A stretch of 63,852 bases of DNA, counting the filler, from Octopus bimaculoides (Eukaryota), in NCBI RefSeq assembly GCF_001194135.2. It is 5 parts of 5 records of this genome, joined end to end, with 100 filler letters (N's around TTAATTAATTAA, not from the genome) between each part and the next. Parts side by side here need not be neighbours in the genome. Positions count along the whole stretch, not along the records: positions 38,622 to 56,566 come from NC_068990.1; 4 more parts are not named here. One strand, given 5' to 3'. Of the stretch, positions 41,994-52,507 are shown one piece after another (within the stretch, counting starts at the first letter, position 1; each line of letters starts with the position of its first letter). The position numbers were made by a program, and so were the translations under genes. Below the pieces are notes generated by a model. That model had not been told where the DNA came from. It searched no databases and saw only the letters and a program-made list of their open reading frames with translations.

Positions 41994-42023
41994 AGCTGTA
42001 GACATTCCGTTGCTATCAACATA
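41994..42023 (-). CDS. RAB18: Candidate 30-nt in-frame alternative mini-exon of Rab18 (YVDSNGMSTA)
   Basis: Minus strand: aactaataccctgtctttttacag|TATGTTGATAGCAACGGAATGTCTACAGCT|gtgagt. Branch-like CTAAT, pyrimidine tract, phase 0-0, no stop. No transcript evidence available. Confidence 0.55.
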
Positions 42024-43639
42024 CTGTAAAAAGACAGGGTATTAGTTGACAAAAGGGTAATAACAAATCATGCAAACAGCAGCCACTAAAACAAAACACT
42101 TGTTATCAGTAGTAATGAAAGAACTGTTGTTGTTAGTGATAAGTTACAATTTTGGGTTACCAATCCTTTAATGACAGAATTCAGAAGTTATATCAGTATT
42201 AAAAATTAAATAATGGTAAGCACATCATATTACTAATGTCACAATATTGCACTATCAATGTTATAATATTGTGTTACAGAAGTACAAAATCATATTACTG
42301 ATAATACAATATCGCGTTTCTTCCTTGGGTATGAAACCCCGTCTTTCACAAAATTAGTAAAATGGTAGCAACTTTCAGTCATTAACGATAAGAATAATGA
42401 TGACAATATCAGTTTCGCATTCTATAACTACAGCTTCAAGTTCAATCTCAATGGACTGTTTCTTGGACAAGTGTCTTCTACCATTACTTCAGATTAATGA
42501 AAGCTCCATGAGTTAAATTTGTTGGACAGAAGATTGTGTGGAAGCCTGCTGGGGAAGAGGGGTGGGGTTAATTTGCTCTTCTTGAATGTCTTTAGTTGAG
42601 TTCATATCTGTGTTCTTCAAACCAGTCTTAACAGCTCTGAAAAAACTACCATTCCTCCTCTATCTGCTGATAAATGCAATTTTTGTTTATTTAGCAGAAT
42701 CTGAGAAGATTCATTCATTTTTATGTCTGTTTCTCCACATTTGCATAGGTTGGATGAATATATTATCCTGACATTGTTTTACAGGCAGTTGCCCTTCTTG
42801 TCACCAACCCATACCTGTTTTACAAGTTAGGGATGTTCTTATCTCATATGTCTTTGAAGATGCAAAGTCAGTAGATGACCTGTTGAAAGGGAAAAAGACA
42901 GCAACATCACTGCATGTGTATGTTGGGCTTCTTTCAGTTACTGTCTACTAAATCCTCTCATAATATTTTGATTGGCTCAGGACTATAATAGAAAATTCTT
43001 GCTTGTGCCATCCAATAAAACTAAACATAATACATGAGGTTCAGAAGCAAACACCTTAAACATGCAGCCATCCTGAGCCCTAATATACTGAATGAACAAA
43101 AAAACAAAAAGAAAAGATACTAAATGAAACAAGCATTAAAACTGCACATCAAAATTGTCTCAACATAACCACACCCTACAACTCCAACACAGTCATAACG
43201 TCTAAAACACCACCACTCCTTGCAACCCCAATACAAGTGAGCCAACAATAGTCTTTATTTGGTTACTCATGGTGCTAGAAATAGCAGCCAAATCTCATTC
43301 AAATCACAACCTACCATCTTGTATAATGCAGTCTATGCTTGAGAAAAGGAAAAAAAGAGATGTACAGATAACCTGTTGACAAAGAAAAAGAGAGTAACCT
43401 CACAACATGCAAACATATGGGCTTCTTATAGTCTCAGTCTACCAAATCCACCCACAAGGCTTTGATTGGCCCAGAACAATAGTAGAAAATTCTTGCCCAA
43501 GCCTTATAAGACTGAACATGATCCACAAAGTACAGAAGCAAATACTTTCAATCATAGACCTTCTTCATCAAGTTTGACTTGGGGTTAAACCGCAACAACC
43601 AACCCCATTGCACCCACCACTGTCCCTATTAGAACTTAC

Positions 43640-44985: not shown

Positions 44986-45058
44986 CAAGAATAACACCTT
45001 GTGCACCTCTGTAATAGCTTGGAGTTAAAGTGCGAAATCTTTCTTGACCAGCAGTGTC
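44986..45058 (-). CDS. RAB18: Rab18 coding exon 4 ([24 protein letters not shown]|V; G3 box/switch II)
   Basis: 73-nt exon with cag acceptor and gtaag donor. [15 protein letters not shown] is the Rab18 signature. Confidence 0.97.
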
Positions 45059-46727: not shown

Positions 46728-46789
46728 CCAGATGGCAAGCTTTGCTTTATTTCCATCCACTGCCAAAGTCTTAACTTTGAAGTCAACAC
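46728..46789 (-). CDS. RAB18: Rab18 coding exon 3 (G|VDFKVKTLAVDGNKAKLAIW)
   Basis: 62-nt exon with cag acceptor and gtgagt donor. Translation is near-identical to Rab18 VDFKVKT.VDGNKAKLAIW; ends in phase 0. Confidence 0.96.
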
Positions 46790-46873
46790 CTGTCAAAATA
46801 TGTTATTCTAGTCAGTCAAAATATCAACAGGTACAGAAGAAAGAGACTATTCAGTTAGTCTGTCTATTTGTTG

Positions 46874-46874
<1 letters not shown>

Positions 46875-46969
<95 letters not shown>

Positions 46970-47013
46970 ATACATACATACACACAATCATACTTATACA
47001 AATAGGTGCATGC

Positions 47014-47057
<44 letters not shown>
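46875..47057. repeat. (GT)n microsatellites flanking the 5' side of Rab18 exon 3
   Basis: Direct reading. Confidence 0.95.
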
Positions 47058-47058
<1 letters not shown>

Positions 47059-47525
47059 TTTATAGGTGAACACAGTGTAAACTAGAAGAGTGCTCAATAC
47101 AGAAGTTATATCATATTTACTGGAAGCTAAAAGCTTCATGGACTGTTATTCTTGCTTCCATTTTAAAGATGATAATGATGAACAGAACAAGGAAAGAAAC
47201 CATACATAAGCAAGAAAAAAGGCATGCACACAATTACATTGTACATAAAACATTAAAAATGCAAACTGCTCAAGGAAATTAACAACGAAATATAAAGTGT
47301 TTAATGCAGCTGGTAATGAATCATATGATAAAGCTCATCAGCATTGTTTTACATCAGTTTTCCATTGGACAGGTCATGTCAGTTCAAGTCAGCTCCTATT
47401 TAGAGTTACTGCATTTCTAGAGAAATTAGAAGACCATGTCATGTTCATATGTTTCATTTTTAGTTTGTTTTCTATGGCTATAAAAGTACATTTCATTTCA
47501 AACTTGATTTACAAATATATATATA

Positions 47526-48418
47526 CGAGATCTGATAACAAGTATTCGGACTGTTGCCATAGTTACAAAGCTAAAGCATGCAGAGTGAAGCAGCTTAGCA
47601 CATACTGACCTTGAACTCTGTTGTACCTGCACACTAAGTTTTAACATTCTAGCTCACTTCCCCTGTTTACAGCAGTGCTTGGAAAGAAGGTGTGTAGCAT
47701 GTGATCATCACATTGACCATGACAGAGAAAGTTGCCATGGTGATACCTACTCAGAGGCCTACGCAAAGTTGTAGAAAGTGTATGGAGAGGAGTGCATGAG
47801 CTGCACACAAGTGTTTGAGTGGTTCAGACGTTTCCAAGATGGCCAAAAAATGTTGATATTGGCGAATGTTCTGGGAGACCCGCAACCAGCATAAGTGAGA
47901 AAAACATCGCAGATGTGTGTGCAGCTGTGACGGGAACTTGTCGAATCACCATACATGAGTTATCAGAGAATGTGCAGATTAGTTACGGTTCATTTCAGAC
48001 CATTATCACTAAAGATTTGGGTATGAGACATGTGTCTGCCAAGTTTGTGCCAAAACTGTTTCCAGCTCACCAAATGGACACTGAGGTTTCAGTTGCACAA
48101 GATCTCCTTGATTGTGTCAAGAACAATGAAAATTTTTTGAAATCTTTGTGCAGGCCTCTGAGTAGGTATCACCAAGCTTTTGACAAAATCTGATGCAGAT
48201 TCTCTACTCAACTTTGTCTGTCATGGTCAATGCGATGATCACACACCACACACTTTCCTTCCGAGCACTGTTGTAAACAGCGGAAGTGAGCTAGAATGTT
48301 AAAAGTTAGTGCGCACGCACAGCAGAGTGCAAAGTCAATCTGTTCCAAGTGGCTTAATTCTCCATGCTTTAGCTTCGTTACTATAGCAACAGACCAGATA
48401 CTTATTGATCAGACCACA
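47526..48418 (+). mobile_element. Second copy of the long-TIR mariner derivative (opposite orientation to 33955-34848)
   Basis: TA|CGAGATCTGATAACAAGTATTCGGAC ... GATACTTATTGATCAGACCACA|TA; same internal HTH fragment and junctions. Confidence 0.92.
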
Positions 48419-48548: not shown

Positions 48549-49092
48549 ATATATTATATATTAGTATAAATTGTTACCCATATGGTTTTATTACATGCTG
48601 GTCACTTAATAAAATCATTAAAATGGTTTTATCTTTAATTTTGTATAAATACATATTTTTACTCCTGATCAAATTACATTCACTGTGATATTATTTTGAT
48701 CGTAAAAGCACGTGGTTGAGATATAAAAAAATTAGATTTATCTAGTGTATATGTGTATGTATATAATCATGCAGATATATGTTGTTCATATGGGTATGTA
48801 TAAATATTTGCATTTATATACTACGGGCATATTGTACTGATGACAACAAGTGGTATCACAACCCTTAACCAGAAATTGATCTACAATTAATCACTTTTAA
48901 AAAATGTTATTCATTTATTCATCTGCCTGGTTACAACCTGTGCTAACGGAGTGTAAATGCGGTTTTTAGAGCCATTTGGCATCTATTTCTAATATATAAT
49001 TATATATTAGTATAAATTGTTATCTGTACGACGGTTTTATTAAACGATGGTCACTTGATAAGATCATTAAAATGGTTTTATCCTTAATTTTC
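48549..49092. repeat. ~95-bp imperfect direct repeat, offset 446 bp
   Basis: TATATTAGTATAAATTGTTA...GGTCACTT.ATAA.ATCATTAAAATGGTTTTATC.TTAATTTT at 48555-48642 and 49001-49092. Confidence 0.85.
48831..48887 (+). ncRNA. Minimal type I hammerhead-like motif
   Basis: ATTGTA-CTGATGA-(28 nt)-GAAA-T-TG-A-TC-TACAAT: perfect 6-bp stem I, intact core, 2-bp stem III; stem II is irregular. Confidence 0.6.
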
Positions 49093-49145
<53 letters not shown>

Positions 49146-50094
49146 NNNNNNNNNNNNNNNNNNNNNNNNNNNNNNNNNNNNNNNNNNNNNNNNNNNNNNN
49201 NNNNNNNNNNNNNNNNNNNNNNNNNNNNNNNNNNNNNNNNNNNNNNNNNNNNNNNNNNNNNNNNNNNNNNNNNNNNNNNNNNNNNNNNNNNNNNNNNNNN
49301 NNNNNNNNNNNNNNNNNNNNNNNNNNNNNNNNNNNNNNNNNNNNNNNNNNNNNNNNNNNNNNNNNNNNNNNNNNNNNNNNNNNNNNNNNNNNNNNNNNNN
49401 NNNNNNNNNNNNNNNNNNNNNNNNNNNNNNNNNNNNNNNNNNNNNNNNNNNNNNNNNNNNNNNNNNNNNNNNNNNNNNNNNNNNNNNNNNNNNNNNNNNN
49501 NNNNNNNNNNNNNNNNNNNNNNNNNNNNNNNNNNNNNNNNNNNNNNNNNNNNNNNNNNNNNNNNNNNNNNNNNNNNNNNNNNNNNNNNNNNNNNNNNNNN
49601 NNNNNNNNNNNNNNNNNNNNNNNNNNNNNNNNNNNNNNNNNNNNNNNNNNNNNNNNNNNNNNNNNNNNNNNNNNNNNNNNNNNNNNNNNNNNNNNNNNNN
49701 NNNNNNNNNNNNNNNNNNNNNNNNNNNNNNNNNNNNNNNNNNNNNNNNNNNNNNNNNNNNNNNNNNNNNNNNNNNNNNNNNNNNNNNNNNNNNNNNNNNN
49801 NNNNNNNNNNNNNNNNNNNNNNNNNNNNNNNNNNNNNNNNNNNNNNNNNNNNNNNNNNNNNNNNNNNNNNNNNNNNNNNNNNNNNNNNNNNNNNNNNNNN
49901 NNNNNNNNNNNNNNNNNNNNNNNNNNNNNNNNNNNNNNNNNNNNNNNNNNNNNNNNNNNNNNNNNNNNNNNNNNNNNNNNNNNNNNNNNNNNNNNNNNNN
50001 NNNNNNNNNNNNNNNNNNNNNNNNNNNNNNNNNNNNNNNNNNNNNNNNNNNNNNNNNNNNNNNNNNNNNNNNNNNNNNNNNTATATATATATAT

Positions 50095-50126
<32 letters not shown>

Positions 50127-52451
50127 AAAATACATACACACACACACACACACACACAGGCTTATATATTTTACAAGACATGTCACGGGACTATGGTTAA
50201 CTAGGTATATTTCATTTTGGCATAGCTTTTATTGCTGGATGCCCTTTCTAATACCAATCATCTTATAGAGTGCACTAGGTGCAATTTCTCATAACACCAT
50301 TACTAGACAAGTTGTCTTGTTTTTAGCAAAAGTGTCTTCCCAACTTTATGGTGTCTCATTCACCAGCCACTTCATAGAGTGTACTGTTTGCCTTGTATTG
50401 TGATACCACCACTGCAAAACAAAACAGCCTTCTCTAAATGAAGTTGTGGCTGTTCATTCAAAGTATACATGACCAAGAGAGTAAATCAAAGAAAAAAAAT
50501 ATGTATATGAATGTGATTTGTTAGACAGAGTGAAATTTTGAAAGTGTGGACCATAAAAACTTGTGAATAAAGTATGCATTCAATTAGATTGTAAAGCAAT
50601 TAAACTGTAAACGAAATATAACAATGCAAAATCATGTAAGAAAGTTATGTATATGCATATATTTCTATATATGAAGCGCTATTTTGTCGCTAGCAGAACA
50701 GAAAAGCAACATCATTGTCATTATTGAACAGCAGCTTTTCCATGTTTGCATGGGTTGGATGGTGTTTATTTCAGGCAGATTTTTCTATGACCAGATGCTT
50801 TTCCTGTCACTAGCCCTCACCTGCTTCCAAGCAAGGTAATATTGGAAATAAAAGACACTGAATATTGGAAATAAAAGACACCGCTTGTGTAACAGTGACA
50901 CTCATTTCCACCTTTAAATGAGGTCAAGACAAGGACACACACACACACATATACAACATGCTTCTTTCAGTTTCTGTCTACCATATCCACTCACACAGCT
51001 TTGGTCATCCCAGTCCACGGCTATCATAGAAGACACTTGACCAAGGCGCCACGTAATGGGACTGAACCTAAAACTAAGTGGTTGGGAACCAAACTTCTTA
51101 CCCTACACCCACACCTGCACCTAAAAAAAGGCAAAGGTTTGATAGTGTACAGCAAAATCAAATAAATACATTATAGTTTTATCAATAAGACAGCTTATTA
51201 TGGTACTTGGTGGAGGGATTTACATCAAAGTTCAAATTTTAAGTTCAAGTCATAAGAACACTGGGATTGAATGAGCAGCTTTTCACATAGACATGGCTGA
51301 CAACAAAGCTTCAACCTGGAACTTCTATGGCAATAGAAATGGGCTCAATCCAAGACTGACAAATTGATATTGAATGTATGCTACTTTTTCTCGAAGCAAA
51401 TATATTTCTGAAAAGCAGTTACAAATTTTCTTTCTGGCTGACGAAAAGCCAATCTGATAAATCCAAGTTTGGAAATTACGTTCAGTCAATCTAATGCTAA
51501 ATTTCAGTCTTGAACCATCACTCAAATATTACCTTAGTGCTATACAATAATAATTTTGCCTGGTAATTATGATCACGAAGGCAATTTTCCATGATGACAT
51601 TATATCTTTTAACTTGTAAAGGAATAAGCAAAGTCTTTACATGCAGAATAGTTCACTTTAATATGATTTCAGTTGAAGATTTTATGGTACTTTGTGATTT
51701 ATTTGAAAATGATAAGAGATCAAGCCAAGAAACTCTTTTGCTATGTTAGATTTCACATTTAAGCTGAACACAGGGTTATATCACAGAATTTTACATCTCC
51801 TGTTTCTGCACTTCAAGGTATTAGATCCTGGTGGATATTGTATCTTCTCAAAGAATTCTTTGTTTTTGAGGGCTGTGTTATAATAGTGAGAGACACTTAT
51901 GAATGTGGATTTATCTGCAAGTAAAGACGATATACACACAGACTAATGCTAGAGACTAAATTATACAAAATTCTAAGTGTATAGTTAGAACTCTTATTTC
52001 TATAACAATTTGTTATTAAGCATATTCTGTAGTTTAAGCTAATTTGTATAAAGATCCAGGCTGATGTCTAAAAACATTGACATTATTAAAATTAGCGCCT
52101 TCAGTAATACATAATCTTAATTCACTAAATAGCTTTATTAGTTTCTTTTTAAATGTTTCTAGGCCGTGTCTATTGATATATCTCAAAATGAATAATCCAT
52201 CATCTTTATAAATACCTCTAACAGTAAGAAATTTTTTATGTCTGCTCTTTTGCCTGAGATCCCATTGCATCTTTTGTGTACCCTAGAACTTGCAGCCCAA
52301 TTTAGTTTGTCTATTAGAATGGTTTCTTTTATAAAGCTAACACCCTGAATTAAGCCAGCAATGTTAAAACTTTCTATAATCCTTTATTTTAAACTCATGG
52401 CACTTCAGGCCGAGGAGAATTATTTGCAAAACAAAAAAAGGCATCACTTAC

Positions 52452-52507
52452 CTATAGTGGAAGCTTGTTCTGGATCAAATGTATCATCAGTAAAACGTAG
52501 TAACAGA
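52452..52507 (-). CDS. RAB18: Rab18 GTPase, coding exon 2 (S|LLLRFTDDTFDPEQASTI|G)
   Basis: Minus strand reads tttttcttctctttcag|TCTGTTACTACGTTTTACTGATGATACATTTGATCCAGAACAAGCTTCCACTATAG|gtaagt. It is 56 nt and matches the Rab18 LLLRFTDDTFDP motif and exon phase. Confidence 0.95.

Follow-up and report, generated by a model that had tools for sequence, protein, structure and literature searches.

Octopod Rab18 very probably contains a bona fide, frame-preserving cassette exon of 30 nt that is alternatively included within intron 5. This exon, hereafter exon 5a, encodes the ten residues YVDSNGMSTA, which are placed right after the residues NKIDK that end exon 5. Its inclusion gives a 214-aa isoform, and its skipping gives the canonical 204-aa Rab18. 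The exon lies in a window of 63,852 nucleotides from Octopus bimaculoides (the whole stretch of DNA that was analysed, made of five parts of the genome assembly joined end to end), and was originally predicted from the sequence of that window as a candidate mini-exon of a possibly lineage-specific, tissue-regulated Rab18 isoform. The real in-frame alternative exon and, as far as tested, its restriction in lineage have both stood. The isoform itself is not an unrecognised one, and we rate exon 5a as already known because it is identical to existing RefSeq and UniProt models, in which it has been present for years.

Rab18 is among the most conserved Rabs, with ~85-90% identity between octopus and human across the G domain; in humans, loss of RAB18 function leads to the neuro-ophthalmological Warburg Micro syndrome. 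Given this deep conservation, an optional 10-residue loop amounts to a small natural experiment in the surface changes that a Rab tolerates. Exon 5a is also a candidate case of cephalopod-specific proteome diversification via splicing, not RNA editing. Its value as a discovery is small, the isoform being present already in RefSeq and UniProt, and it would be of more than moderate-to-low interest only if a switch between tissues and a biochemical effect came to light. Those database entries, which are automated models, make no comment on exon 5a, its conservation, its regulation or its structural position, and the literature searched on octopus or Rab18 microexons gave no description of the exon. 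What is new in the present analysis is an Argonauta orthologue of exon 5a, the absence of the exon from three other mollusc classes, a conserved intronic island around it, and the predicted structural placement of the insert at the position of the Rho insert.

Gene structure and splice signals

The piece of the window that holds Rab18 was 100% identical to Octopus bimaculoides GCA_001194135.2 chromosome CM046610.1 (locus L002) on both sides of an assembly gap. Exons 2-5 were located by tblastn with a human RAB18 query, and the following features were placed on the window.

52452..52507, minus strand: Rab18 exon 2, SLLLRFTDDTFDPEQASTIG
46728..46789, minus strand: Rab18 exon 3, GVDFKVKTLAVDGNKAKLAIW
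44986..45058, minus strand: Rab18 exon 4, 24 encoded residues
43640..43758, minus strand: Rab18 exon 5, VYDVCSKQSF…MLVGNKIDK, which carries the G4 NKxD motif
42069..42074, minus strand: TGCATG, an Rbfox-type hexamer 51 nt upstream of exon 5a
42024..42050, minus strand: 3' splice region of exon 5a, with CTAAT, the pyrimidine tract ccctgtcttttt and the acceptor cag
42023..41994, minus strand: Rab18 exon 5a, a 30-nt alternative cassette exon encoding YVDSNGMSTA, phase 0 to phase 0
41988..41993, minus strand: 5' splice site gtgagt of exon 5a, the donor beginning at 41993, with an A-rich stretch after it

Exon 1 and exons 6-7 were absent from this piece in tblastn and motif scans; exon 6 lies at L002 46478, ~9.0 kb further downstream and outside the piece, and the complete Rab18 intron 5 of O. 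bimaculoides measures 10.7 kb. The encoded protein matched the Pfam Ras family (PF00071, E = 1.2e-57), and its top PDB match was human RAB18 (1X3S, E = 1.7e-94), with Rab1, Rab8 and Rab10 at ~1e-46, in keeping with Rab18 orthology. Public entries name the octopus protein Rab-18A.

The 3' end of exon 5 reads ...AAG ATT GAT AAG/gtaagt, i.e., it is in phase 0 after NKIDK, and 1616 nt of intervening intron separate it from exon 5a. On the minus strand, exon 5a and its borders read cag/TATGTTGATAGCAACGGAATGTCTACAGCT/gtgagt, and the wider context is ...gtcaaCTAATaccctgtctttttacag/TATGTTGATAGCAACGGAATGTCTACAGCT/gtgagtaaaaaaa... The codons are TAT GTT GAT AGC AAC GGA ATG TCT ACA GCT, free of stops. 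The acceptor reads ...caaCTAATaccctgtctttttacag/ with its last base at 42024, a branch-point-like CTAAT (42045..42041, minus strand) lies ~18-21 nt upstream of the acceptor AG, and upstream of exon 5a the closest AG is ~60 nt away. The AG acceptor, GT donor and frame-preserving stop-free body of a cassette exon are all in place. The original prediction is thereby upheld in its particulars, since the strong acceptor with CTAAT, the 30 stop-free nt and the gtgagt donor were all found on the minus strand where they had been described, TGCATG is present at 42069-42074 (-51 from exon 5a), and the phase-0 end of exon 5 with YVDSNGMSTA inserted after NKIDK was confirmed by the exon borders, the translation and the RefSeq isoforms.

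Annotated isoforms

The inclusion junction NKIDK-YVDSNGMSTA-ERREV is found in three records, namely XP_014777795.1 from O. bimaculoides (Rab-18A isoform X1), XP_029640398.1 from O. sinensis and UniProt A0A0L8GV00_OCTBM. The protein common to these records (P0121 in our protein set, 214 aa), which reads ...MLVGNKIDKYVDSNGMSTAERREVSKEEGLKF..., was the best match to a query that joined exons 2-5 to the ten residues and a generic C-terminal part of Rab18, and the concatenation of exons 2-5 with the 30 nt translates exactly to its residues 24-137. The skipping form (P0122, 204 aa) is XP_014777796.1 (O. bimaculoides isoform X2), XP_029640399.1 (O. sinensis) and CAI9729420.1 (O. vulgaris). Both the inclusion and the skipping isoforms are therefore annotated, at the level of gene models, in O. 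bimaculoides and O. sinensis. Transcript support for exon 5a is taken over from these RefSeq and UniProt models, and it is very unlikely that a 30-nt exon would enter gene models without transcript evidence.

The annotations of O. vulgaris (CAI9729420.1) and Argonauta (GAB1603057.1) hold the skipping 204-aa form only, though both genomes have an intact exon 5a, and the missing inclusion form is likely an annotation gap. The label 'isoform X2' in the name of the Argonauta protein is probably a transferred name and no evidence of an X1. An exact-sequence lookup of a hypothetical Argonauta protein with exon 5a in the protein collection gave no match. A search with a 74-aa query returned only short fragments, and those with >86% coverage were rejected as intron read-through ORFs, not exon 5a forms. 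Tissue-specific splicing in O. bimaculoides has been analysed with multi-tissue data in a 2026 preprint (10.64898/2026.09.05.749416), and a study of that scope would contain PSI values relevant to exon 5a.

Conservation in octopods and other molluscs

Alignment of the orthologous introns in related species, put forward with the original prediction as a check on it, showed that O. sinensis, O. vulgaris and Argonauta all retain exon 5a together with its splice sites. Within the genus Octopus, not one nucleotide of exon 5a, of its acceptor or of its donor differs in O. sinensis (L001 53588-53617) or O. vulgaris (L004 52893-52922), and the exon sits within a longer conserved stretch of the intron.

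41760..42212, minus strand: conserved intronic island of ~450 nt around exon 5a (O. bimaculoides vs O. sinensis)

Identity between O. bimaculoides and O. sinensis is 98.5% in this island, against an intron mean of 92.4%. The 453 nt of the island hold 7 differences where ~34 would be expected (binomial P ~7e-9), and a 276-nt stretch inside it is interrupted by a single 1-nt indel (binomial P ~1e-8). The 200-nt flanks of exon 5a are 95.0% and 98.5% identical, whereas the flanks of the constitutive exons 3-5 are 57-94.5% identical. When the flanks of an alternative exon are better conserved than those of its constitutive neighbours, this is classically taken as a sign that the exon is regulated. 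Over an evolutionary distance as short as that among Octopus species (~92% intron identity), the conservation of the island may also be due to local variation in mutation rate.

In Argonauta hians, the exon is found at L003 22295-22324 as TATGTTGATAGCAATGGAATGTCGACGAAT, which translates to YVDSNGMSTN, and the region L003 22263-22353 keeps TTTGTGAATTAATAACCCTCTTTGTTTTACAG/TATGTTGATAGCAATGGAATGTCGACGAAT/GTGAGTAAC. The splice sites ACAG/ and /GTGAGT are kept, the GTGAGT being the same in O. sinensis and O. vulgaris, and the branch-point site reads TTAAT in place of CTAAT. The exon 5a region is the sole non-repeat part of intron 5 that could be aligned to Argonauta, in which the introns are otherwise unalignable, interspersed repeats aside; only exon 5a and its immediate splice signals are kept, and the wider island is gone. 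Between Octopus and Argonauta 25 of the 30 nt match, and the codon changes comprise three synonymous and one non-synonymous. This pattern is similar to that of the constitutive Rab18 exons, which are 86.3% identical at the nucleotide level with 71 synonymous and 8 non-synonymous codon changes. The probability of obtaining at most one amino-acid change and no stop from five random substitutions is P = 0.008. Exon 5a is therefore under protein-level purifying selection, and it is at least as old as the last ancestor shared by Octopus and Argonauta.

The limpet Patella, the scallop Pecten and the chiton Liolophura also have an intron after NKID(K), in the same place and likewise in phase 0. In none of these three does the homologous intron hold a related open 30-mer or a 10-mer resembling YVDSNGMSTA. 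Lineage specificity, which had been proposed as a possibility, is consistent with this pattern as far as tested, with exon 5a in Octopus spp. and Argonauta and absent from the intron of Patella, Pecten and Liolophura. Judged from the octopod, limpet, scallop and chiton genomes compared, the exon would be octopod-wide at least and possibly of older origin; the protein collection contained no annotated decapodiform or Nautilus Rab18.

Three further Rab18 proteins of 205 aa (P0159, P0160 and P0162) came from Logan RNA-seq contigs L009-L014 (SRR27666063/71/74, SRR24189493/498/501). They have the octopus-like termini MDDQDILTTLK... and ...GSYSACGGYCVI, are plausibly from decapodiform cephalopods, and are all of the skipping form NKIDKERREV.

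A 15-aa insertion at the same site in Rab18 of Ridgeia piscesae (P0143) was considered as a parallel case and rejected. The intron after NKIDK in this species (L008 4971-5476) holds a 33-nt tandem repeat in ~14 copies, which translates to QDQCDVRSYWL and of which one copy is in P0143; the insertion, carved from this intronic repeat, was in all likelihood created by gene prediction. Vertebrate Rab18 proteins of greater length (241-248 aa) were also set aside, as they have N-terminal extensions and no insertion at the exon 5a site.

Placement of the insert in the Rab fold

Against human RAB18 (PDB 1X3S), the inclusion form gives a collinear alignment with one clean 10-residue gap right after NKIDK. 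The original prediction held that canonical Rab18 is without this segment, and indeed no counterpart was found in 1X3S or in ~360 other Rab18-like proteins retrieved; a regex scan of 359 retrieved proteins found the insert in P0121 only. The segment had also been assigned to a surface loop after β5. This agrees with an AlphaFold2 model (32-sequence alignment), in which residues 128-137 are predicted as coil between β5 (117-123) and α4 (144-153) with the rest of the Rab fold kept; confidence in the model is modest, with a mean pLDDT of 66.8 overall and ~60 across the insert. The ten residues start one residue after the NKID aspartate that reads the guanine base, within the short surface loop that joins β5 to α4.

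In topology, the site coincides with that of the Rho insert of Rho, Rac and Cdc42, which also lies between the G4 (N/T)KxD at the end of β5 and α4. When canonical octopus Rab18 is aligned with Rac1, an 11+2-residue gap, i.e., 13 gapped positions, falls at the Rho insert, and the exon 5a isoform fills most of this 13-position gap. However, the Rho insert is constitutive, ~13 residues long and helical, whereas the exon 5a insert is optional, 10 residues long and predicted as coil, and no sequence similarity was found between the two. We therefore regard the likeness as one of analogy, not homology.

Rac1b offers another known system for comparison. Its optional exon 3b adds 19 in-frame residues near switch II, and nucleotide cycling is altered. 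Octopod Rab18 resembles Rac1b in that an optional cassette exon adds a short in-frame segment inside a Ras-superfamily G domain while the fold stays intact, but the octopus insert follows G4 whereas that of Rac1b lies beside switch II.

We infer that the extra loop would leave the GTPase fold intact and alter the surface beside the nucleotide base, where it could tune nucleotide exchange, hydrolysis or partner choice (GEF, GAP, GDI or effector) in those cells that include the exon. A bolder proposal is that splicing has given octopod Rab18 an optional insert loop at the Rho effector-activation site. If inclusion is cell-type specific, e.g., neuronal, and alters nucleotide cycling or the choice among partners of Rab18 (the Rab3GAP GEF, the TBC1D20 GAP and the ER/lipid-droplet tethering effectors), this would amount to a lineage-specific, splice-switched re-wiring of a deeply conserved Rab, and to a convergent echo of the Rho insert; we consider this proposal rather unlikely.

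Possible regulation of inclusion

The conserved intronic flanks of exon 5a may direct a tissue- or cell-type choice between the two forms. One version of such regulation is that exon 5a belongs to the neural microexons that bilaterians control by the SRRM (eMIC) and/or Rbfox programme, and that UGC/UGCAUG elements near the 3' splice site cause it to be included in neurons and skipped in other cells. This would be a refinement of the cassette-exon explanation and is compatible with it; we hold it as a doubtful possibility. Exons that depend on the eMIC feature a UGC near the 3' splice site, a UCUC-rich tract, a strong branch point of the CUAAY type and a long zone free of AG (PMC8797185).

Exon 5a shares part of this profile. 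Like the neural microexons of SRRM3/4 (PMC8797185), it is very short and frame-preserving and encodes surface-loop residues beside a functional site, here the G4 motif, although its 30 nt exceed the strict limit of the 3-27 nt length range and fit only the looser definition of <=51 nt. It also has the highly conserved flanking intron of this class, as well as the CUAAY branch point and long AG exclusion zone, which take the form of CTAAT and ~60 nt in O. bimaculoides. In contrast, the splice sites look strong and not weak by crude scores, and no CTCTCT or TCTCTC is present upstream of exon 5a, the polypyrimidine tract being without UCUC repeats.

The UGC elements are likewise divided in what they suggest. 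UGCUG at -58 and UGCAUG at -51 are conserved in three Octopus species, which favours the neural programme, but both lie upstream of the branch point, and no UGC comes closer to the acceptor than -51 in Octopus or -134 in Argonauta. The original prediction had remarked that the UGC falls outside the usual SRRM4/eMIC window, and these distances prove it correct. Exon 5a has neither the UGC near the 3' splice site nor the UCUC-rich tract of eMIC exons (PMC8797185). As regards Rbfox, no GCATG was found within ±300 nt of the Argonauta exon 5a, and the TGCATG is weak evidence because it is conserved only within the genus Octopus and is absent in Argonauta. The 2015-era UniProt entry, which models the inclusion form only, is a further point in favour of the neural microexon. 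To judge from its sequence, exon 5a appears to work like a regulated microexon while lacking two testable, defining features of the eMIC class.

Chance background and other explanations

Intron 5 of O. bimaculoides offers many sequences of this general form. It contains 17 windows in which an AG, 30 stop-free nt and a GT follow one another, and 271 AG..GT candidates of 9-60 nt that keep the frame and lack stops; six of these score at least as high as exon 5a by crude donor and polypyrimidine scores. TGCATG occurs six times in the intron (~0.56 per kb). The bare sequence pattern of exon 5a is no better than chance, and the exon stands above chance because of public annotation and cross-species conservation, not because of its motifs.

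This background lends some weight to the view that exon 5a is a cryptic pseudo-exon, i.e., splicing noise caught by automated annotation, with no protein-level function and only incidental conservation. The exon is omitted by two annotations (O. vulgaris and Argonauta), and no independent transcript-derived protein with the insert was found, as it was absent from the Logan, JGI and ENA transcript-derived proteins of a 5.8-billion-protein collection searched with an 84-aa junction-spanning query. However, in Argonauta, where the remaining intron is unalignable, the exon shows coding-like substitutions and intact splice sites; it lies in an island of near-identity in Octopus; and it was modelled independently in the RefSeq annotations of two species and in the original genome annotation. 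We consequently find a pseudo-exon highly improbable.

In the Rfam scan there was no match near threshold, the best being a plant miRNA model outside the island that scored 23.8 bits where the gathering score is 98, and the RNA folding of the island was no better than that of shuffled sequence (z = -0.20). On these two results a hidden ncRNA is unlikely, and so is a long duplex for editing. More generally, that the island is another functional element (an intronic enhancer, a small RNA or a double-stranded RNA-editing substrate) with the 30 nt as a by-product is scarcely credible, since its one support, conservation that reaches ~200 nt on each side of exon 5a and so beyond core splice-signal needs, has to be set against these Rfam and folding results, the retention in Argonauta of exon 5a and its immediate splice signals but not of the wider island, and the codon-structured substitution pattern.

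The match mentioned above belongs to a weak hairpin-like similarity to the plant miRNA families MIR2600 and MIR1511 at 42241-42315 (minus strand), which scored 23.8 and 20.6 bits where the gathering scores are ~98-100. This similarity, a short way beyond the island, almost certainly arose by chance.

Other features of the locus

The assembly gap lies in Rab18 intron 2 and spans 936 N (window 49146-50081). On both sides, at ~49070-49145 and 50082-50200, it is flanked by TA/TATATA-type and CA-type microsatellites, which probably explain the break in the assembly. Long (CA)n/(TG)n arrays also occur at 46860-47140, directly upstream of Rab18 exon 3, and yield spurious ORFs of 91-145 aa on both strands.

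Intron 2 contains, in addition, a 124-aa ORF (MVQTFPRWPKNVDIGECSGRPATSISEKNIADVCAAV...) at 47819-48193 on the plus strand, i.e., opposite to the gene. On visual inspection it resembles the DNA-binding N-terminal region of a mariner-type transposase, and it had no Pfam match at E <= 0.01.

A gene with a Spindle_Spc25 domain is positioned head-to-head directly upstream of Rab18 in the scallop Pecten maximus (L006 1-239) and the tubeworm Ridgeia piscesae (L008 1-182), which suggests that the two genes have been a conserved pair for a long time.

Finally, an interspersed repeat of ~147 bp lies in Rab18 intron 5 at window 38746-38892, with its core at 38746-38831. Several copies of the ~147-bp repeat, in both orientations and with 89-93% identity, are present in the O. 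sinensis Rab18 locus, and the 86-bp core is found in at least five copies in the Argonauta locus at ~85% identity. The repeat is probably a SINE-like element common to octopods.
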